64,000 bases of DNA from Trichoplax adhaerens (Eukaryota > Animalia > Placozoa), in the NCBI RefSeq assembly GCF_000150275.1, contig NW_002060976.1, positions 191,626 through 255,625 on the forward strand, in the 5' to 3' direction. Positions 43,480 through 62,760 of the stretch are shown piece after piece. Position 1 is the stretch's first letter, and each line of letters starts with the position of its first letter. Under the pieces are notes generated by a model, which was not told the DNA's origin, did no database searches, and worked only from the letters and a program-made list of their open reading frames with translations. The translations under genes were made by a program, and so were the position numbers.

Positions 43480-44454
43480 ATGGTACAAAACGATAGCGTT
43501 CTTAATATGATGGACAACTGTTCTGACTACCATAGCTCCCAAAAAATCTCTGGCCTTCATCCTGTTTATGGCATATTATCCATCTTGGGAATTATTGGAA
43601 ATGGGATAGTATATCGAGTGATTAGGCAACAGAAAGGATCTAATGCACAATCAGCTGAAATATTTATCACCAGTTTAGCGGTTGCCGATATGTTAACTGG
43701 ATTGTTCGCTATAGCTGTACCCGATTTTGTTATTCCTTACAAATATTATCATTATCCATCAATAGGTTTACCAGTTTTCTGCGCTATGGTCAGCTCGCAA
43801 TATTTTATATTTTACTTTGGCTTCATATCATTATATACGATAGCAGCTATTAGCTTTGAACGATGGTGCGCTATTGCAGTTCCTTCGAGTTATCGCTGTT
43901 TATTTCAAGCTCATCGCACCAAACGTTATGTCATGATAATCTGGTTAGTCGGGTTAATCTTTCCTATTGACAATATATTTAAACATGTATTGGTCAATAA
44001 AGATGGTTGCGGCCGTTGTAGATGGACCGTGATGTTTAATAATGATAGCATCGAAAGGATTGTCTTTCTGAATTTAGAACTTATTAGAATCTTCCTTCCA
44101 ACTATTTTAATTGTATTTTTCTATAGTGACATTGCTAGACGTATTTGGTCTATAAATTCGCATTTTCAAAATCGTGATACTTTTTGTATCAAAATTACGG
44201 TTATGGCTTTCTTTGCAGCATTCGTTTTCTTATTATGTTGGATACCTAATGAACTATATTTCACATTAGTTATCTTTAAAGTTACCAAAATGGATTCGGT
44301 AATACATCGAACAACGAAATCCATGATTATCTTAAATTCATGCTTAAATCCAATCATTTACATGTCTGCAAATTCAAAATATCGAAAATGCTTTAGGCAA
44401 TGGTTATTGGGTCACAATCGAATTACTTTTGTTGCACCCAAAATGGCAGCTTAA
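43480..44454 (+). CDS. Rhodopsin-family GPCR, intronless, 324 aa; paralog 3
   Basis: 7TM with GN, LAVAD, ERW, CWIP and NPIIY; paralogous to the other two, with shorter ICL3 and C-tail. Confidence 0.93.
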   Translation: MVQNDSVLNMMDNCSDYHSSQKISGLHPVYGILSILGIIGNGIVYRVIRQQKGSNAQSAEIFITSLAVADMLTGLFAIAVPDFVIPYKYYHYPSIGLPVFCAMVSSQYFIFYFGFISLYTIAAISFERWCAIAVPSSYRCLFQAHRTKRYVMIIWLVGLIFPIDNIFKHVLVNKDGCGRCRWTVMFNNDSIERIVFLNLELIRIFLPTILIVFFYSDIARRIWSINSHFQNRDTFCIKITVMAFFAAFVFLLCWIPNELYFTLVIFKVTKMDSVIHRTTKSMIILNSCLNPIIYMSANSKYRKCFRQWLLGHNRITFVAPKMAA

Positions 44455-47047: not shown

Positions 47048-49561
47048 CCTGCATAATTTCTTAACTAATTGATATAAATTTTACGTAACAGCCGTATTTG
47101 CTTTAGTTTAGGCTTTGGCTAATTTTCTTAATTAATGTATGTAGGATCACAGAATTTTATTCAAAATCCTAATAATTATCTTCAATTATTAACAATATAA
47201 ATCAAGCGCACATGGAATGGATTAGAGTAAGCCTTCATTACCACGAAGATATAATCTTATACGATATAAGAAACCATACCCTACAAACGTTAATAGATTT
47301 CTTTAACAGATTTATTTAAAACTTAGCGAGCTGGTGATAATGTTATAATACTATGATATCAGGTTCCACTTTATCGAGAGATGATAGAGATTACCCGGAA
47401 AAACATTGAATATCATGTTAATAGTAGCAGTATTCTTGTATAGACTAGTTATATGAAATTTTATAATCATATTTTTCAAGTTCTAATTCCTTGGGCACGT
47501 GCCCTTTCATTTATATCCCTAATTTATGTCACCTTACCTGTTAATAGCATAGTAGCCCACACGGTAACATATTATCCATATACAAAGGATTCTTTAGCTT
47601 CAATGAAGGTTTCATTTAGTTTTTAGGAGTTACAGCTCGATTTTAAATTATCTAAAGATGATGATTGTTCAAATTACGACCCCATTTTCATTATCATTTT
47701 AATTTTGGAAAAAGCTGAGATCTAATGTAAAATCTTTGCGTAGAAGGTGTTTCAATTATTTGAATATGTATCTTTTCAATAGCTGAACTTACTATATAAT
47801 AAATAAAAAAATTTATAATATCTCAAGGTTTAAAACTTACTCCTAAATAAATAATAATTCTAGATCATAAAATTACTTGCTTTCAGAATAGGACCTTATG
47901 TGCATCGAACTTTTGCGTTTTTTTGCTTAATCAAATTGTTACTTGATACTATTTACTAATGAATATCATTGTGGTTGCTACAAACTAGAGTTGTTGTGAG
48001 GCATTTTGACTAATCAGAAGAGAATATTGAATCTATTTTTATATCCAGACAGTAAAAATCTCATAGCAGAGACGAATTAAATTCTTTTTGTGAAATAGAT
48101 TTAACTTATACCTAAGGCATCTTTCAATAATAAAAGCCAGTAGAGGGAATATGATAAATACTGTATGTTGTAATATAATGACGTAAACAGATCAAAAACT
48201 CATTGCTAGTAGGTCCATGAAAGGATATATCTTTTTTAGCCATGAATACCAGGTGCTTATACTCTAATGATTGAATCAAGTAGAATTGTATGTCTGGATA
48301 GAAATATTTGACCGATACATTTTTAAATCTTAGGCCATTAGTAGATCTATGATATTAATAGGTCAAAGATTCAATCTTAGTCAATCCAGCAATTATCTCA
48401 TCAAGTATCACAGTATTATATCAAGATTCTTCTTTCTATATAGCATTGCCTAAAAATCGTGGAACCATTTATGAAGTAGATATGCTTCAGATAATCAGCA
48501 ATAATCTTATTTCCATCAGTGTCTCCTATGCCGTTATTGAGCGTTCACACTTGCAGTAGTCTGTCTAAGATTGATTTAAATTTAAAGTAGGGTAAAACAT
48601 CCCTTAAAAACCGCATTAGCAAAATTGAAAGAAAAGTGCTGCCTAGAAAGATTCTAATCTCTATTCCTCTCCACTAAAATAATGTATCAGTAAAAGCACC
48701 TTATTCTTATTTTATACAATGAATTAGGAACAAGTAATTGTAATATTGAATCGCCTTAGGCATATCTCTAATAAGGAGTGCGATACGCTACATATTTTCA
48801 TTTATGAATGATTTTATAGGAGTCTGATTTCGGAATATCATAGAATAGATGGTTGATTAATGATGTAATTATTATGCAAACTTTTTCTATATGAGTAATT
48901 AATGAAAATAAATAGAGATTTATGTCGATCTATTTTGTATTAAATATCGTAATTTTATTAAGCAATTGTGCAAAGCTGATGTAACTTAAAATGATTATTA
49001 CGAACCAAATAGAATCAACTAAAAACAGTCATGTTATCAGATATTTATTAATTGATGTTCTGTACAGATTTGAAACAGAGTAGCATAAAAGCAGTTGGAT
49101 TACTATACTTATAGATCAACATGAATTATTGTAATTGTAACAAAATAACTTTTACCCCTATCTTAACTTGTTTATTTGAACGGATAAAGAATCGATTGTA
49201 AAAGTTGGATCATGAAGCTTTTATCGTCTCAAATTTTTAAGGCAAATATCAATAGTCTCCAACTAACGTAAAATAATTTTAATATTAGTTATTGTAATGC
49301 TAAATAAGAGGTAGCCTATAAACATTATAACGTTATTACCACAAAGTATCGATGGGGTATTTAACGGCTAAATATCGGTAAATTTAAATTTAGTAGTGCA
49401 TTAACTTCCTTCTCTATTGATCGACATTAATATGGCTGTCGCATTCGTTTATGCTAACGTGGTCGGATGGTATATAGTTTAAATAAATAAGTAAATTTAG
49501 GATAATTTTCCTCTTTTCGTTATTGTTCTTCATTTTTGAATATTAATTAAAGGTACTAAAA

Positions 49562-52500
49562 TTATTTTATGTGCTTATTATGAAAGTAATTGGCGAATTC
49601 TTCGCGAATTTTGACCGCTTTCACAGAAGCATTACTTCCTTGCTTTTTCAACGGTTTTAGACCAGCAGGTTTATCAAACATTCGCCAATTACCTTGCAGT
49701 GGAACTTTAAAGCCTTGATCCTTTATTACTCTATCAAATGTTCCCTTTGGTGAATAAATTTCCTTGGCTGTAGTATTTCGTCTCATGAAATTATGCAAAA
49801 CAACACACGCTAAAGCTGCTCTTTTAGCGTCTTGCATACTTAAATGAATAGGTTGCTGAAAAATTCGAAATACAGCTGCCATAATTCCAATAGTGTTCTC
49901 AATCACTGCTCTTACCCTAACAATGTGATAATTGAATAATTTCTCTTTTATACTTAGACCACAACGCCGATGATAAGGCTTCATTAGGTGGACATTTAGC
50001 GGAAATGCATCTTCAGCTACAACTACATATGGTACAATATTGTGTCCACCAGGCAATGGTACCTGCTGAGGAAATTGCAATCCATTTCGCGATAGATTTT
50101 GATATAAACTACTGCCTTTAAATGCACCGCCTTCGGAAGGCTTTCCCCAATTGCCGATATCTACTGCCATAAAGTTATAATCGGCATCGATCATGGCCAA
50201 GAATACAAAATTATCAGAATTGTTCGTATTTACACTATTAGCTTTTCCTTCAACATTAGGGTCAACAATAATATGCCTTCCACCAATTGCCCCAATACAG
50301 TGGCAAAATTTCCATTGACGATGAAATTCACTTTCTATCTCCAGCCATTCTCGATCAGTGATAGGAGTCTATAGTTTATTAAATTTATTCAATTCATTAA
50401 TTAGCTAGGTAGATAGCGTTGCGGACCTTCTCGATTGATCAGATAGTCCTATGGACTTTTAGATGCTCAAGCTTTTTAGTAGATTTTAGTATCCGCGTCC
50501 TAGTAATTATATGGTGCACTATAAGGAGGCTAATTACCTTATCTAATTCTTTATTAAATAAATAAATATCAATTTACTGGTATGTGGGTACGGTAACCAA
50601 ATCAAATGTATCACTTAATTATTAGTCGATGAAAATACATAACAATGATTTTGCGGCTAATAATGATAATTATTATAATAAAATAAAACTTGTAAGCGTT
50701 ACTGAGCTAAGCTAACCATCTCACTAAGCGATGTCAGCGATTTATTATCATTATCATCAATGTTTTACTACAATTACGTGTTTATTTATCTTACTAACCC
50801 GAAGATAGCAAGCCAGAACTTTAGGAATAGCCTCACAGACTTTGCTGATTATTTGATACATACTAGTTTGCGATATCTTATATTGATATCGAATACTATC
50901 ATAAGTATCACCAGTGACCAAAAATCGAAGTGTTAACATAACTTGTACAGGTGGGCTGATAGCAATGCCATCTTGATTTGGATTTTCCTGCTCTAATTCA
51001 GGTGCTAACAAAGCCGATAAGTAACGAAAATCTTCAGGCGAAAGTCGCATCATATTTTGAAATGTTGTTTTGTCATCCAATAATAATTGACAGCATGACA
51101 TGTAAGATTCTTCTATACGAGGGTTAGACCTACAATTGTAAATACCCGTGCACGTATCGCATTTAATAAGCAATTTCATCCCTTACTAATAAACAAACCA
51201 AACATTTCAATTCATTCATGCTTTTAAACATAATCGCCATGTTACGTAATCTTTGGAAAGCCTTGAAGAGGCTTACTAAATTATTTTACTATTTAACATA
51301 GATGTAGTTGAAAAATTCTTTAAATATTCTATTTCGTAGGGTTGAGCGCTGAATATATTGGATAAGAAAATTTGTATTATAAATAATTAATTTAAATTTT
51401 ATTAGATTCAGCCAAATTTAAGGTTAATCTGCTATTGTCTATTAAACGCATTACATTGCAGAAATAAGCTAAAGATCATTTACGTTCATTGAGGCTGATG
51501 TCAATATATATATACAGTCTATTGAGCTTATAATAGAACTCAAAATTTTCTTTCTGATGCAATAGTGCTTACAACAACATCTGATTCATTTATCTATTTA
51601 TACAGAGCATTGTCGAGTATATTTTAGTTCGTTAATTAACAAAGGACACTAATTTTCCTGTACGTTGCTTCCTATACCAAAATAAATAACTTAACGTAGA
51701 CAACTCAACTCAAAAAATGCTCATATCTAAACGTAAGGTTTTACATCTTTAAAGAATTAATATGAGCGAATCTTTTGTCTTTAATTAAAGCTATACATAA
51801 GTATTTGCAAGAAAATTACAGTATAATGTTACAAATCTTAAAAGCATTATGTTAAGGAGGTAAAACAGATATAACAGATATATGAATATTAGCAGTTTAG
51901 GATAACAGCTAAAAAGTAATATCATAAGCTTAAATCATATCACCATGACCTACCGTAAAATGTAGGATCCCCCAAAAAAGAAATGTCAGGTTTTAAAATA
52001 ATTGTTAGCTACGCTACTACTAAAGCAATTCTAGGATCAATTTTAAAATTTACTAAATTAATTTACCCAACGTATTAAAATAAAAAAATAGAATAGCGTG
52101 TTGAATTTACTGGTGCCGTTATTAAATGATATCAATACGTAAAATCGATTACCTGGTAGAAATGGTTGCTTGATCTACTGTTTGGCTTGATGATTCGACG
52201 TAAGATTTATTCCTAGCTTCATCATCTACATTGTATTTGATGAAAGCATTAGGATGAGCTATTAGCTATTCTTCGATATGAACATGACAGTACTATACAA
52301 GTCTATAGCACAGACCTAATTCAAGCTTTTTCTTAGCTTTGGTTGGCGTTTGTCGTTTTCTCTTCTTCCCTCGAATTTGACTATTTAAGATGAATAGGTA
52401 TAATAGTAAGACGATTTTAATTTCATAATTGAACATGTTTCCACGAGCCAATATGAAGCTAATTAGCAAAGCATTCAAGATTAAATGGAACAGTAAAGGA

Positions 52501-53122
52501 AAATAATTTCTTCAATAGGCAAGCCAGCTGAATCGACTGATGTAGGATGCTACTCTGTAATAGGATTACCTTCCATCAGTTGAACTACTATCCTGTACCG
52601 CAGATTGCATCCTTTGGCATCGGTCTAGACACTAGTATAGTACAGAACAGGAGCATCTACACAAATTGTGTTTTATTTGTCTGGCTGTATTTGCAGGTAT
52701 AATACGCGTATACTGTACAACTGTATATCTAGTGTACAAGGGTTAACGTAGTGCTAAGATATCCATGCCTTTGCACGGCGAATCAGTATTATTTGGATCA
52801 ATTTACTTTATGTTATAATAACAAGTGGATAAACTGTGCTACAGTACTAAGCAAACTGGATGGCTTGTGAAAATACCGTGGTGAATTGATAAAAGCAGAT
52901 ATACACGTTGGTACATCATCACTGAGAAGGTAAAGAAACCTAGCAAGAGTGCTTCATTCTATTACACAGTGCAGTAATAAAGAGGAAAAAGCTAATTTCC
53001 CACTTTCTCCATGTGATAGTGTATGTACACAGCACAAGCTAAACGACTTCATACAGCTCCCTGTTTATGAGTTAGCATACCTCTGCAGTAACCTCCTCAT
53101 CGTTATCTCCCTTTAGCGCCAT
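49562..53122 (-). CDS. PIF/Harbinger transposase-derived protein (HARBI1/ALP1-like, DDE_Tnp_4 fold), ~495 aa, 7 exons, degenerate catalytic triad
   Basis: Exons 53122-53081, 52958-52877, 52624-52570, 52380-52316, 52258-52153, 51129-50799 and 50368-49562; all GT-AG, phases join into one 1488-nt ORF. Harbinger motifs: FQNMMRLSPEDFRYL, AISPPVQVMLTLRFLVTGDTY (HTH), CIGAIGGRH, AEDAFPL...LMKPY, FNY..VIENTIGIM, ACVVLHNF. The last two exons are more secure than the first five. Confidence 0.85.
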
Positions 53123-53223
53123 TTTATAAGGCTTCATGTTAGTAAAGTCAAGTTATCACCTTTTCGAGACTATAAAACACAAAGATTCTGATAGATAGAT
53201 ACATAGGTACCGTATATAATTGG

Positions 53224-53997
53224 CTAGAACGGACAGTAAATTAAAGCAAGATGATCTCCTATCAAATCGTGCAAAATCAAATCATATCAATGCAAGTATA
53301 GCTTAAAATTGCAGTCTATTCCATTTCTTTTCTTCGGGCTTTGCCAGAATGTGAATGATTCTGCTATAAAATTACTTCCTTGTATCAAATAGTGTAAAAA
53401 TTACATCCTATGAATGCGCAATGTAACTTGAAATTGTACCAAACGTGTATTCCGCGAATTTCCACGGTTTTCTCTAGAACGTGAAAGATGCTGCAGCAAG
53501 ATGAGCTCCTTCTATCAAATCATGTTAATGCGAATGCAACTTAAAACTGCGCTATATTTCATTTCATTCCTACGGATTTCACTGGAACGTGAACGATTCT
53601 GCTTCAAGATGATCTCCTTCTATCAAATAGTGCAATAATCACACCATATTAATGCGATTGTAACTCAAATATGCACTATACAATATTCCCGAATTTTTCC
53701 ATGGGCTTCGCTAGAACGTGAAAGATACTGCTACAAGATGGAGCTCCTTGTATCAAATCATATTAATGCAAATGTAGCTTAAACGTGCACTCTATTCTGC
53801 CGAATTTCTAAGGGTTTCACTAGGATATGAAAGATATTGCTGCAAGATGACCTCCTTCTATCAAATAGTGCATAAATGACATGATATTAGTGCGAATGCA
53901 ACTTAAAATTACTCTGTATTCCGCCGAATTTCCACGGTTGCTAGGACATAAAAGATACCGCTGCAAGATAACCTCCTTCTATCCAAATGATGCAAAA
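53224..53997. repeat. Tandem repeat, ~108-130-bp unit x ~6.5
   Basis: CTAGAACGTGAA.GAT..TGC..CAAGATGA.CTCCTTCTATCAAAT units start at 53224, 53344, 53474, 53582, 53711, 53820 and 53941. Confidence 0.9.
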
Positions 53998-54543
53998 ATA
54001 ATAATCGTTAAAAGTAGAGGAAGCTAATTTACTATTTTCTGAATGTGGTAGGGAATGTGCAGTTGTCATATTTTGTACTATTGCTATATTTAGGATGAGA
54101 TCACTTCTCATTACACGATAGCTTATAAGTTCTACTAATTATGAAAGAGCATACTAAGTCATTCATTTGATTTCTCATAATAATCTGTAGATACTCTAAA
54201 CTTGTTTACTTGTCAACAGGGTAAGAGAAGGCTATATAAATGAGCACATCTCTTACCTTAGATATCTTTCTAGTTGGTCCCTCCGACTATGCGCTATGTG
54301 CTTTGGATTTAAATGAACGTAGTTATTTAATTTCTTGTTTACCCTGTTCTCTGAGTTTATTAACCCTTGTTGCCATGACTGCCTAGTGGCAACAGTTTAT
54401 TCAATCAGCTACAACTTTTTCTTGCGTTAACTCTTGTTCGCTTATCTCTGCCATCATCTCTTCCAAGTTGCACAGCTTGTTTTTGCAGTCCTTGATGTTG
54501 GTCAAAGTAATTCTATTGCTATTTCAAAGCAGCTATGTCTGAA

Positions 54544-54717
54544 ATATATATATATATATGTTATATATATTAAATATATATAATAATATATACATATAAA
54601 TATATATATAATATACATATATAAATATATATATATGTAATAAATATAACCTATATATATATGTACATCATATATAATCTATATAACCTATATATGATAA
54701 TATATATATATATATAA
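54544..54717. repeat. Degenerate (TA)n microsatellite
   Basis: ~170 bp of interrupted TA dinucleotides, lying between a 52-bp direct repeat (54452-54503 and 54766-54817). Confidence 0.9.
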
Positions 54718-55356
54718 TTTCTTAAATATTTCTATTGTATTTCTTCAATTTCTTCATCATTTCTTCATCATCTCTTCCAAGCTGCACAGCTTGTTTTTGC
54801 AGTTCTTAATGCTGGTCCCGTTAGCGTACCTCCGTTACCATATTCATCGCCATGGTAGTTGCAACTTCAACAGTACTTTGACGCTACGTCTGTCCTTGAC
54901 TACTTCTTATTACACCAGTCGTTGTTAGCATATCTTACCTAGAAGGCTGTTAAGGATATAACTCGCCATTGAAGCTTAGATATCATTTCCTCTTAGGCTA
55001 GCTAATGCTTTAGTACTGTATTGAGCGCTTGAAGTTAACTAAGCCTTTGCTCATTGCACCTCTTGTTTAACCTCTCTAAATTATCCAATTGCATACCAAT
55101 TCCTTTAGCATTAAGTAATGTTTACGTACCTCTCCTATCATAGTATCCATACTGCCATCCAGCCGTCCTCCAAGCCATCAGTTATTCGAAGGCGAATTGG
55201 AGTGGTGAGAGGAAATCTTGCAGTTGGCAAATCCAAAAGTGCATGTTAAGGGCCTTTAGTTAGCCTTTCCAACATCGATTAAGCTATGCATCACTAACAG
55301 ACTGTGCACTGGTTATTTTATGAGATTATCACCATCAATTCATGATTGAGGAGAAG

Positions 55357-57394
55357 ATGGGTAAGCCTTATCATCGTCGAAATCGAAATATGAAACATCA
55401 TAAAATGCAAGCAGCAACGGCAGAGGACGAGCCAAGCTATCCCGGCGAAGGTTGTATATTGAAATTGAGCTAAATGACCAATTGTGGCGATAAATGATCT
55501 TAATTGTGCATCAATGTTATCCCTGTAGACGTCGTTGATGAAGAAGAATCAGGATGGAATAAATTCCCGTTTCCTTTAGCCATGTGGGTAAGAGCACTGC
55601 AGCGATGATCAGTTCATGCAACTTGCAAATAGCATGTCACCATCTTCTTTTCTATTGCGTTGATATTATGGTGTTGACTGCTGATGCAATACTAACTGTT
55701 AGTCTGAATTGTCAAGATATAGATACGACTCTTTATTGAGTGTAATTATTTCAATTAAGTAACTTGTACTAGATATACTGTAAGTACATAAGAAAAGAGA
55801 CAGTGTTGAAGGCTGTGCAAACTAGGCTAGAGGAAGAGAGTGAACGATGCGTGATTGCTTAGATCTCATCTTGTTACTCGTTGGTAACAACATATCGCTC
55901 GCTATTGATTGAGTTGATTTAGCTGTTGTTCCCTTACTCATTGGGAACTTTTATTCCCTAACGGAATAAATTAAATATAGCCAGATCTAAAGTCTGCTTG
56001 ATTATTTATGACTACATCCCAGCAGTTTGGATAGACTGTTGATGTGAATTCAAATAGAATATTATCATGGATTTAGTATGCATCATAATGGTGCAAGGAG
56101 TTGATACATTACAATTTCATGCACTCTATTTGATTGCATTACATATAGGATTTTCAACATTGTGATCCGAAGAAATGCTCTGGCAGGAAATTAATGCGAT
56201 TAGGCATAGTTCGCCAACTCAAAGTTTCAACGCGTTTTAATGGGATCGTTCTTAGTCCGGATGCATCACGTTATGTTTCACCAGAAGACGCCACTTTGAT
56301 TGAAAAATTTGGTATTGCTGTCATTGACTGCTCGTGGGCCAAATTGCATGAGGTGCCTTTCACCAGGATGCGTTTTAGTAACTCTCGCCTGTTGCCATAC
56401 TTATTAGCGACCAATCCGATTAACTATGGAAGACCTTGTAAGTTGTCCTGTGTTGAAGCTTTCGCAGCGACAATGTATATTGCAGGTAAACGATTAACCA
56501 ACACATGTAATTATTGACAAGGTTGGACAATAGTTTTTGCATGATAGTCTATTAGGAGGATGATGACTTAAGATAGCTTATATTTGGATAGGATTTAAAG
56601 ATTTTGCAGAAAGAGTACTGATGCCCTTCAAGTGGGGGAAAAACTTTATTGTTTTAAACAAGTATGTTGAATGTAATCATTGTTTATTCATCCGCTGCTA
56701 ATGTTGGTAATATTGCATAAGTAACGGTAGTGGAAAGACCTAGACATGGCTATAGCATGGAATTGAATTTTTGTCGTAATATGATAGAGAATTATTAGAA
56801 CAATATGCAAAATGTAAGACAGAAAAGGAGGTAGTCAAAGTACAGGAAAATTATATCCTGCAATGCGAGCAAGAACGCCGAGAACGGAAGAGTATTGGTA
56901 CGTAAATTTCTCAAAAAGGACTTACAGGGTTATTTCAGTTTCCATTCTTTATTAGTAAAGTGTCTTTTGTTGTTACTTTATCCGTAAGCAGAATTGGCTA
57001 TTTATTAAAATAAATACCCTTTTAAACGACAATAGATCCAATGGATATTGACTTGGATAAAGAATTTTGCAATCCTAACAGACCTGAATTAGGAATGCCA
57101 TCAGCGAGGTAGGCAGTAGATTTACATCTTTCTCGATTGTATTCATTTTAAGGTAGCACCCATTCTGTTATAACTGTATGAATCCCTCTTTTAATCTATA
57201 GTTATGAGCAGATGTAACGATCTTAAAATTGAATTATTTAATTGGTGAAATTATTTTTTTGACATAATCTAATTTACATCAGCTCAAGCAGCGATGAAGA
57301 GATCAATGATGTCGCTGAAAAATTGGAAGGTGTTCTAGGCGAAAATTGTAAAAATGATTTGCCTGGTGCCGAAGCATCTGTAAATGAAAGTTAA
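55357..57394 (+). CDS. TSR3: 18S rRNA aminocarboxypropyltransferase TSR3, ~284 aa, 7 exons
   Basis: Exons 55357-55450, 55529-55587, 56149-56485, 56592-56661, 56788-56897, 57036-57108 and 57283-57394 join in phase. Motifs [64 protein letters not shown]; acidic C-tail. Confidence 0.95.
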
Positions 57395-59028: not shown

Positions 59029-60766
59029 CTAATCTATTTTCTGCTTCTTAATACTCAAAGAAGCAAAATCAGCTAGTAACTGATTGACATGACTCACCTA
59101 CAATAAATAGATATTTCGACAAAAGCGAAAACAGTCATTTGAAAAAGTATAAATTAAAAATACGATTTTCGTACAGCATCGCGATGTACTGTACTGTATA
59201 TCTTTCTATATTGTACGCCTTTAGTGAGCAACAAATGTGCAGCATTACCTCTTTCGCTGTCGTTGAAATACTAATACGATTCGTGAGCATTTCAAGGTCA
59301 TCTATATCTTTGTCGGTTGCATCTACATTCTTGGAGCTTTTAAGATAGTGCTTGAGCAATTTAACAACCTAAATTGGCGTGAATTCGTAAAGTATTTAGT
59401 GTTGTATTCCATCAACGCAAATAACATTCTATACTCGTACCTCCGTTAATTTTGCCTTTAATCCAGTTATATCGCATGAACAGCTTTCATCTTCATCTAA
59501 TATACGTAAGTGCGATAATGCCAAATGTAGTGGTGTTATACCGTTAAAATCTGTAGCATCCACGCTAGTTCCTGGAATGACATAGCAAAAGCATAAAACT
59601 GATCGTTTTCTTAGAACTACAGTAAAAATAGGTTTCATCAACTTTAGTATTTCATTGATAAAATTTGACCACGAACCTGCGCCCATCAATGTAGTCAGAA
59701 CTTCAATATTACTAGAGCAGGCAGCTGAAATTAACAATAGTGAGTTGTCTACTGTTCTCTTACATTAGTTATCGAAAGTATTTGACTTTAACAATTCCAA
59801 TGGAGTGTATGATTTACCTAAATGTAAAGGTGTATTTCCGTTGCAATCACGTTGATGGACATCTGCCCCATTTTCGATTAATACCTTGACTGTAAATTTC
59901 ATTTACTGTTAATGTAAGTATAGCACACACCGTACGATAGCAGCTTAAGCATAAAATTGAACAATATCTATTTGATAATGTCGTAAAGTTATTAATACTC
60001 GTACTTTGTACTGTTTCAATCAATAATGTAATTTTAAAATGTAACAAGATGATGAGAGCCCCAAATTGGAGTCTATGAGAAACAATTTGATCACGAATAA
60101 CGTATACAGAGTAGTAGTATGGAAGTGATAGCTTTTCAATTTAGCAAACTAGAGTAACAAGAGTAATTAAGTGAACAGATAGCTACGATCTACAAGCTAC
60201 TACTATAATAACACTTCCTCATATTTATATTACACCAATTTCATCAGCTACATGGTATAAACACAAGCATATTCCACCGCAAAGTTAGGATAAGACGATA
60301 CCAATAGGATAGATTGGTTGCAATAGTCTTACCAATGCCATTATGGCCTAAATTGGCAGCGACGTGGAGGGCAGTTCTGCGTTTATCATCAGCCGCTCTC
60401 ACATTAACACCACGATGAATGAGTTGACAAACTACAGTCAAAGACAGACATATCAAGCAATATTTTAAGCAACTTCGGCTGAAAAGACGTTGGATATACT
60501 GCAGTATAATCCAAAGTGACTATTGCTAATTGTACAATTACTTATAGATGGTTATTTACGGTAGGTTATTGCATTCCCTAATTTTAATTTACTCTAAACT
60601 GAACTACAGAACAACTATTCTAGTCTAAGTTGCCCGAGTTTTAACCGCATCATCACTATCTTTACATTGATTTCTATTTCATCGATGATACGATTCAATA
60701 ACGATGCAATCACTTTACCTAGTTGAATATTTCCTTCAGTTGCAGCTCGTATTAGCCTTCTTTCCA
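59029..60766 (-). CDS. ANKRD54: Ankyrin repeat domain-containing protein 54-like (7 conserved 3' exons; 5' exons unresolved)
   Basis: Exons 60766-60719, 60431-60333, 59889-59818, 59724-59677, 59571-59441, 59368-59249 and 59097-59029 join in phase: ERRLIRAATEGN..AADDKRRTALHVAA..QRDCNGNTPLHLAAC..DFNGITPLHLA..and the ANKRD54-type tail DDLEMLTNRISISTTAKEVSHVNQLLADFASLS. Confidence 0.88.
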
Positions 60767-60974
60767 CTGTCAAAGTAAAAATGAATTCATCTGATCATCT
60801 CTACAATATTGACAACATGTCGTTCAACAATTACTCCAGCAGATGGCTCTTTTACAGCCAATTTGAAATTATCTGCAGTAGTAATGGTAATGTACTGAAA
60901 GCTTTGATACTGATTTTGCAGTCATTTTACATCAGCTATACGAGTATGCTCTTAACTCTGTTCTCTATGACTAC

Positions 60975-62760
60975 ATGGGTATCGCTGATTAGGCTGCTAT
61001 TGACAATTTCGACTATTTGTATACGTAGAATAGCAGTCATGATCCATGATCATGACGCCTTTTACTGAATAAAATGATGGTAAGTGGTACTGATTGCTAA
61101 GGTACGAGCTAGACTAAAGCGATATAAACTATCTACTGCACTTTCTATCAATGCTGTTATCTTGACGAGGAATCCTAGTTGTCGCAGATTAGGCTGTTAT
61201 TGACAATTTTGACTATTTGTACTCGTAGAATAGCGTTGATGATACAAGTTCTCGATGTCTTCTACTCGATAAATAGATGTTATATCGTACTGAAAGTAAG
61301 GGTACAAACTACACTAAAGCTTTACAAAATGTCTACGCCATTTCAATCAAGATTTTGATATAGACGAGGAATGATGGGTGTTGACGATCAGGACGTTATT
61401 GACAATTTTGACAACTGCATTTGTACTCAACATGTAGAATAGCATTCATGATACAAGTTCTTGACGCCTTTTGCTATGTCGTACTGATACAAACTGCCTA
61501 CTTCACGTTCTATCAATAATTTGATATCGATGAGGAATGATGGGCTATTTTTGATTAAGACATTATTGACAATTTTGACTATTTGTACACGTAGAATAGT
61601 ATGGATGCTACTAGCTCTTGACCCTTTTGCTATGTCCAACAGATACAATTGTATGTTCCACTTTCTATCCCTACTTTGATATAGACGAGGAATGATGGTA
61701 TCACTGATTAGGACATTATGGACAATTTTTGACTATTTGTATTCGTAGAATAGCATTCCTGATACAAACTCTTGACGCCTTCTACTAGATAAACGGATGC
61801 TATGTCGTCCTCCACTTCCTATCAATACTTTAATATAGACGAGAAATGATGGGTATTGCTGATTAGGACGCGTTATTGACAATTTTGACTACTTGTACTC
61901 GTAGAATGGCGTTTCAGTCATGATAGAAGTGCTTGACATCTTTTACTGGATAAACGAATGCTATATGGTCCTGCTACAAACTTTCGGCTCCACTTGCCAT
62001 CAATACTTTGATATGGACAAAGCGTGATGGGTATCGCTGATTAGGACGTTATTGACAACTTTGACTATTTGTACTGGTAGAATAATGATACAACTGCTTG
62101 ACATCTTTTACAGGATAAAGGAAGGCTATATCGTGCAGATACAAACTCTCTGCTCCACTTGCTATCAATACTTTGAAGTAGACGAGAAATGATGGGTATT
62201 GCTGATTAGGACGCGTTATTGACAATTTTGACAACTTGTACTCGTAGAATGGCGTTACAGTAATGGTTACTAGTGCTTGACATCTTTTACTGGATAAATC
62301 AAAGCTATATCGTCATGCTACAAGCTCTCTGCTCCACTTACTATCAATACTTTGATATGGACGAGAAATGATGGGTATTGCTGATTAGGACCCGTTATTG
62401 ACAATTTTGACTACTTGTACTCATAGAATGGCATTACAGTCATGATACAAGTGCTTGCCATCTTTTACTGCATAAACGAAACCTATATCGCCCTGCTACA
62501 AACTCTCCGCTCCACTTGCTATCGATACTTTGATATAGACGAAGCATGATAGGTATCGCTGATTAGGACATTATTGACAACTTTGACTATTTGTACTCGT
62601 AGAATGGCATGACAGTCATGATACAAGTGCTTGACATCTTTTACTGGATAAATGGATGTTATATCGTAATGATTGATTGTAAAGGTAGGTGATAGAAGAA
62701 AGCAATCCAAACTATTTCCTCCACTTGCAACTTACTATCAATACTTTTATATGGACGTGG
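60975..62760. repeat. Tandem repeat, ~155-200-bp unit x ~10, probably intronic to the ANKRD54-like gene
   Basis: GATGGGTATTGCTGATTAGGACGTTATTGACAATTTTGACTATTTGTACTCGTAGAAT core recurs at ~60976, 61175, 61375, 61540, 61695, 61849, 62027, 62192, 62371 and 62548. Confidence 0.92.

Follow-up and report, generated by a model that had tools for sequence, protein, structure and literature searches.

Domestication of PIF/Harbinger transposases as host genes is already well documented in vertebrates, insects and plants; no report was found of such an event in an animal that branched off early and whose genome is nearly devoid of transposons. Here we describe a one-copy PIF/Harbinger-family gene from such an animal, the placozoan Trichoplax adhaerens, located on the minus strand at positions 49562-52436 of a stretch of 64,000 nucleotides (contig NW_002060976.1 of assembly GCF_000150275.1, positions 191,626 to 255,625), which is referred to below as the window. 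Its closest analogue is ALP1 of Arabidopsis, a PIF/Harbinger transposase-derived accessory component of Polycomb repressive complex 2 (PRC2) (PMC4671723, PMC7282668), and the closest animal cases are the PLG genes of insects. Judged by its sequence, the gene appears to be an unannotated, single-copy, Harbinger-derived gene with a catalytic triad incompatible with catalysis. We put the probability of domestication, in the sense that the host has retained this PIF/Harbinger transposase descendant, at roughly 0.55.

Like ALP1, the Trichoplax gene derives from a PIF/Harbinger transposase, is immobile, is restricted to one or two copies and has an intron inherited from its ancestors (PMC4671723). 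In both proteins two of the three catalytic residues are replaced, leaving DGA in ALP1 versus GEE in the gene studied here. ALP1 has orthologs throughout land plants, a mutant phenotype and a proven partner, whereas the Trichoplax gene is known from sequence alone, and the two have only the distant DDE_Tnp_4 domain in common. The "ALP1-like" names attached to animal matches at NCBI reflect automatic naming, not orthology.

The insect genes DPLG1-7, APLG1/2 and LPLG1/2 (PMC9710019) resemble the Trichoplax gene in being animal, single-copy genes with an intact open reading frame (ORF), without either terminal inverted repeats (TIRs) or duplications of the target site (TSDs). They often encode a predicted nuclear localization signal, and some were domesticated without a neighbouring MADF gene (PMC9710019). 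The standard criteria for domestication are synteny, cross-species dN/dS (the ratio of non-synonymous to synonymous divergence) and expression, and the insect genes differ from the present one in being supported by conserved synteny and by cross-species dN/dS values of 0.04-0.33 (PMC9710019). Among the features by which that study recognizes domesticated genes, those found here are a single copy, a coding region that is intact (also in a second haplotype or strain) and the loss of transposon hallmarks.

HARBI1, which acts with NAIF1, is likewise an animal Harbinger-derived single-copy gene with a helix-turn-helix (HTH) region followed by a DDE_Tnp_4 domain. Vertebrate HARBI1 keeps the DDE triad, and in this respect a second Trichoplax gene, the paralog on contig C1405 (CIGALDGKH, VVADDAFPL and VENAFG), is nearer to HARBI1 than the gene studied here. 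Active animal Harbingers, represented by beetle and damselfly copies (P0003-P0020), show 37-44% identity to the Trichoplax protein over the whole DDE exon, and have the same N-terminal layout, the same intron position in genomic contigs and the same C-terminal tail (PxGxFD...GxWR...IRxEFxxYF). They differ in keeping D-D-E and YYNYK and in being multi-copy, whereas the Trichoplax gene is unique, lacks transposon ends and is catalytically degenerate.

Catalytic motifs and predicted fold

The last exon matches the Pfam family DDE_Tnp_4 (PF13359) with E 3.4e-17 and 63 bits (cut-off 24.8). The HTH region, described earlier as retained, is indeed present: in BLASTP searches its exon aligns collinearly with the N-terminus of the full-length relative P0030 (36% identity, E 2e-19), though the match to Pfam HTH_Tnp_4 is weak (E 0.024, below the cut-off). 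These and all other similarity searches used single exons as queries rather than the joined spliced protein.

All of the altered motifs listed in the preliminary description read as claimed. The catalytic triad is G-E-E versus the canonical D-D-E: the first Asp is replaced by Gly in GAIGGRH (codon 50284-50282) and the second by Glu in VAEDAFPL (codon 50014-50012), while the third residue, Glu, is retained in VIENT (codon 49900-49898). In addition, SDGG has become SEGG, FNYRLSRAR has become FNYHIVRVR, and YYNYKxxFS is unrecognisable as VNTNNSDNF. The DDE exon was aligned with 18 relatives and then with 150, and across the latter both catalytic Asp columns are at least 95% conserved. Of the 38 columns conserved at 90% or more, 11 are altered (the family median is 2.7%), as are 5 of the 20 most conserved columns; beyond the altered motifs, conserved positions are mostly retained. 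Replacement of two metal-binding carboxylates out of three (D to G and D to E) suggests that the gene product is no longer able to cut DNA. A still-active nuclease or transposase, in which the conservative D to E change is tolerated and another acidic residue replaces the first Asp, would be compatible with the retained third Glu, with the preservation of most of the fold and with the ability of Glu to coordinate metal. Such activity is nevertheless highly improbable given a glycine at the first catalytic position and the changes among the most conserved columns; moreover, there are no ends to act on, no second copy in the genome and no partner gene detected on the contig.

Structural modelling, proposed earlier as a check, gave for the last exon an AlphaFold (AF2) model with a predicted local distance difference test score (pLDDT) of 92, a predicted template modelling score (pTM) of 0.89 and an RNase H-like fold. 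The weakest block (residues 41-50, mean pLDDT 56) lies at the degenerate YYNYK region. In a wide structural search all top matches were DDE transposases or integrases (Tn5, Z 7.8); a Foldseek search with the predicted fold returned nothing significant, and a sequence search found no solved structure for the family.

Copy number, selection and relationships

The gene is not a transposon copy. In the assembly of 105,631,681 bases on 1414 contigs, the 5.3 kb holding it is unique at the DNA level, and the copy-number check suggested in the preliminary description revealed no near-identical copies with TIRs. At the protein level its relatives in the genome are the C1405 paralog (35-40% identity) and a locus on contig C1409 (23% identity). 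Nearby, only a dispersed repeat of about 250 bp recurs, which lies some 0.9 kb upstream of the exon 1 proposed earlier. Also in agreement with the earlier account, no credible TIR or TSD (including a TWA duplication) was found flanking the gene. The sole flanking inverted pair, at 48798/53855, was rejected as a candidate: it matches at 20 of 25 nt, one of its arms lies within a tandem repeat, and the flanking trinucleotides are TTT and CAT.

The combination of altered motifs and an open frame was evaluated by a neutral-decay simulation, which started from the coding sequence of the C1405 paralog (two exon pieces placed end to end) and used a substitution model biased towards A+T. An amino-acid change of 29% requires about 0.15 substitutions per site, and at this distance the 267 codons remained stop-free in 0 of 300 runs; at 17% change, close to a rough, uncomputed lower-bound estimate for 11/38, they did so in 3% of the runs. 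Since neither indels nor the other exons were included, the outcome is conservative. Changes of this kind are incompatible with an active element; they therefore arose after transposition had been lost, with the frame staying open. Furthermore, contigs of other sequencing runs contain 11 single-nucleotide polymorphisms (SNPs) in the core exons, of which 6 are synonymous and 5 non-synonymous (pN/pS 0.22, one-sided P 0.016-0.03, for 11 SNPs only), and no stop or indel was found in the coding sequence of the other haplotype or strain, which is about 0.7% diverged. Together these data indirectly suggest that selection held the frame open after catalysis was lost, and the confidently predicted fold of the last exon is a third, likewise indirect, line of evidence.

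Domestication as a catalytically dead protein, the central proposal of the preliminary description, is thus supported in that the gene descends from a Harbinger transposase, has lost catalytic residues, occurs once in the genome and lacks transposon hallmarks, and the simulation and the pN/pS of 0.22 point indirectly to frame-keeping selection. If the frame was indeed kept open by selection since the loss of catalysis, the protein would most likely be a non-catalytic DNA- or chromatin-associated adaptor, in which the HTH, the basic patch and the fold would be retained as binding surfaces. A Myb/MADF-type partner might be encoded elsewhere, as with ALP1 and HDP1 in plants; the "nuclear scaffold" role put forward earlier is speculation. 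On the gene's own contig no Myb/SANT/MADF partner gene was detected, and the listed MADF and Myb_DNA-bind_4 matches are on other contigs. The Myb_DNA-bind_3 and Myb_DNA-bind_5 profiles gave no matches, but their controls were silent too, and fast-evolving Myb genes can escape Pfam.

Several observations weigh against host retention. No ortholog with more than 44% identity was found among 1.84 billion representative proteins, by word-based protein searches, or in the JGI metagenomes. The gene has no self-match in public protein collections, though a neighbouring gene for a G protein-coupled receptor (GPCR) has one, and apparently it is missing from the public gene set. The only contig from a related species, which carries a relative of this GPCR (P0153), is 5.4 kb long and ends short of the gene. 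No spliced transcript was seen: all mapped runs cover the introns without joints and behave as DNA, so that the splice junctions remain predictions, and several transcriptome-sized runs with the same species label contain 0.00-0.03 of the sequence words of the stretch. In addition, the SNP sample is tiny and includes calls from contigs with a depth of 2-3x, the confidence of the AF2 fold stems largely from the family alignment, and the 5' end of the gene is ambiguous.

The absence of detected orthologs, transcripts and public annotation would also be expected of a dead relic, i.e. an old immobile Harbinger insertion that has lost its ends and its partner gene and whose ORF has acquired no stop or frameshift so far, without any host role. 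The very long branch and the degenerate motifs are what relaxed constraint would give, and divergence between haplotypes is of similar size in coding and non-coding DNA. Moreover, the triad is also broken in about 10 of the 150 nearest relatives, which are probably dead copies; two of these have the D to G change as well. We nevertheless regard a relic as rather unlikely, although it is the alternative with the most in its favour, as 11 changes in 38 near-invariant columns are difficult to reconcile with an open ORF under neutrality (P <=0.03 for the last exon alone and without indels; 0/300 at the point estimate). The excess of synonymous SNPs and the preservation of all three GT-AG intron pairs also argue against it. 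Finally, most elements identified in Trichoplax adhaerens carry frequent stops or frameshifts (PMC2871265), so that an intact Harbinger gene stands out.

A total of 9585 homologues were found in the representative library, the best with 37-44% identity. The terminal branch of the Trichoplax gene is very long, ranking third of 149 for the catalytic half and fourth of 144 overall. In the trees the gene groups with P0015, P0017, P0096, P0055, P0077 and P0123 (SH-like support 0.93), not with the C1405 paralog; a sister relationship to this paralog was rejected by both half-trees and was not seen in the full tree, despite one shared intron position. The members of the clade are a few Logan-contig sequences and beetle sequences, and several of them are degenerate. 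Both P0015 and P0055 have Gly at the first catalytic position, as in the gene studied here, and P0015 also has its EWLxIE, DADYNFM, LPGG, ENTxGI and CVVLHNF motifs.

This grouping, together with the common intron position, would fit membership in an older Harbinger-derived gene family, catalytically degenerate and present in other animals as well; the D to G change would then have been inherited and domestication would not be lineage-specific. However, identity is low (about 36%), support for the pairing with P0015 is only 0.09, the named members of the clade come from beetles with many transposon copies, and three members retain the first catalytic Asp, two of them the whole triad. Since long branches of degenerate sequences attract one another and a single transition suffices for D to G, the grouping with P0015/P0055-type sequences may be an artefact, and we consider an inherited, catalytically dead family to be quite improbable. 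If the Trichoplax gene is a genuine host gene, it would offer a simple setting, as paralogs and MADF candidates are few, in which to ask what is gained by keeping a catalytically dead transposase fold; should it be a mere relic, the finding has no wider consequence.

Gene model

Two minus-strand Harbinger-like ORFs (49562-50200 and 50757-51179) in the ORF list had been proposed to splice together, and at the sequence level this was borne out: the downstream ORF, extended to the nearest acceptor, forms the fully open last exon, and the junction 50799/50368 is in phase 0, has GT-AG borders and is collinear with a full-length family member. Upstream of this pair, the preliminary description had added five small exons in perfect phase to give 7 exons and about 495 residues. 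Two of these, the K/R-rich exon and the exon that follows it, hold up, with GT-AG borders and fitting phases, but the three further upstream are only candidates. Between the proposed exon 1 and the K/R-rich exon there are 23 stop-free, phase-compatible exon chains, so that the phase fit of these three exons proves nothing and the sequence cannot choose among the chains. In the earlier model, 52316-52380 was an internal exon with its acceptor at 52381; in the model favoured here, the ATG at 52436 is in frame with the K/R-rich exon and gives four coding exons, 1332 nt and 443 residues (Table 1). Translation could also start at the ATG at 51179, giving a shorter model, and the candidate exon at 53081-53137 may be a 5' untranslated exon, or nothing at all.

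The four 3' exons are joined by GT-AG introns with matching phases, and three of them resemble family members. The fourth, the 73-nt exon, by itself matches neither the family nor any Pfam entry and was included on the strength of GT-AG borders and fitting phases on both sides. A length of 443 residues is normal for the PIF/Harbinger family, and the order of domains is the usual one, i.e. a hydrophobic stretch and basic patch, the HTH region, the RNase H-like DDE_Tnp_4 domain and the conserved C-terminal tail. The basic patch is at residue 20 of the four-exon model, behind the hydrophobic stretch, and the same succession within the first 25 residues or so is shown by 10 of the 26 full-length relatives, as well as by the C1405 paralog.

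The intron preceding the DDE exon (50798-50369) is found in the same position and phase in the canonical C1405 paralog, and its position recurs in genomic contigs of other animals (e.g. tttcag/ATGCCT in L017). In addition, of the 150 library proteins nearest to the gene product, at least 34 begin no more than 8 residues from this point. This intron is therefore a legacy of the transposon family, and hence the introns provide no evidence for domestication.

Table 1. Coding exons and introns of the Harbinger-derived gene in the favoured four-exon model, with the additional upstream candidate (window coordinates).
Feature	Position	Strand	Description
Last coding exon	49562..50368	-	268 codons + TAA stop at 49562-49564; entire DDE_Tnp_4 / RNase H-like domain and conserved C-terminal tail
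Intron, 430 nt, phase 0	50369..50798	-	GTTAGT...CTATAG; position and phase as in C1405 paralog and genomic contigs of other animals
HTH-region exon	50799..51129	-	Encodes FQNMMRLSPEDF...TLRFLVTGDTY...; first base finishes the codon started in the preceding exon
Intron, 1023 nt	51130..52152	-	GTAATC...TTGTAG; phase fits, AG + G = Arg codon
Small exon, 73 nt, acidic and Ser-rich	52153..52225	-	DDEARNKSYVESSSQTVDQATIST
Intron, 90 nt	52226..52315	-	GTCTGT...ATGTAG; contains in-frame stop
First coding exon, favoured model	52316..52436	-	ATG 52436-52434, hydrophobic stretch, then basic patch RGKKRKRQTPTKAKKK
Putative exon 1 of the preliminary description	53081..53137	-	ATG at 53137 or 53122; donor GTATGC at 53080

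Other Harbinger-type loci and neighbouring features

A repeat survey of Trichoplax adhaerens listed exactly three Harbinger/PIF hits, counted simply as transposon remains (PMC2871265), and this equals the number of Harbinger-type loci found here. The C1405 paralog (C1405:1599027-1600905) is a one-copy, multi-exon gene with canonical triad and motifs, including YYNYKQ and SDGG. It has three introns, one of which is common to the gene studied here, and shows 60% identity to a Logan ORF (P0004); it may be either a host gene of the HARBI1 type or the last Harbinger left intact in this genome. The third intact locus (C1409:683688-683951 and flanks, minus strand) matches DDE_Tnp_4 with E 5.9e-12 and HTH_Tnp_4 with E 0.0017; by eye, the first and third positions of its triad appear to be replaced (VIGCMSTCYI, KSAFRLLIG). 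The three unrelated, single-copy, intron-bearing Harbinger-derived genes of this small, transposon-poor genome (GEE, degenerate C1409 and canonical C1405), with a handful of MADF genes, could conceivably make up an early-animal set of chromatin or regulatory factors of transposase origin, the gene studied here possibly belonging to an older catalytically dead D-to-G clade with other animals, but we consider this doubtful. MADF proteins are encoded on contigs C1413 and C1414.

The remaining DDE_Tnp_4 loci (C1407:1134610-1137596 and C1400:1045620-1046099) were set aside, as they seemingly represent a different type of transposon, adjoining an exonuclease-like ORF. They look like an "ISL2EU-like" type with "YqaJ-like" exonuclease ORFs. 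One of them contains an uninterrupted ORF of 483 residues, which is worth mentioning as Trichoplax adhaerens is reported to have no active transposons (PMC2871265).

TSR3 was previously placed head-to-head with the Harbinger-derived gene. A TSR3-type exon is indeed present on the plus strand (56194-56514, Ribo_biogen_C E 5.9e-36) and the two genes are divergent, but they are about 3 kb apart. On the other side, about 5 kb past the 3' end of the gene, lies the intronless rhodopsin-type GPCR gene (7tm_1, 43480-44454, plus strand), which is in the public set (self-match P0152), has a 75% identical relative (P0153) in a Logan assembly and could be used to anchor synteny comparisons.

The window is AT-rich (about 30% G+C) and contains several repeats. 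At 53346-53999 and 54540-54777, directly upstream of the proposed exon 1, there is a tandem repeat with units of 238/124 nt (about 77% matches), after which come an AT microsatellite and a repeat of 11 nt. The dispersed repeat of about 250 bp (54063-54392), between the gene and TSR3, recurs on many contigs in at least 20 partial copies (72-91% identity) and possibly corresponds to the low-copy family resembling miniature inverted-repeat transposable elements that PMC2871265 mentions. At 60781-62234, short ORFs on both strands with recurring peptide motifs (...LLLTILTICTRRI..., ...ITRPNQQYPSFLVY...) suggest a local tandem or dispersed repeat, and ankyrin-like ORFs are found on the minus strand at 59429-60456.

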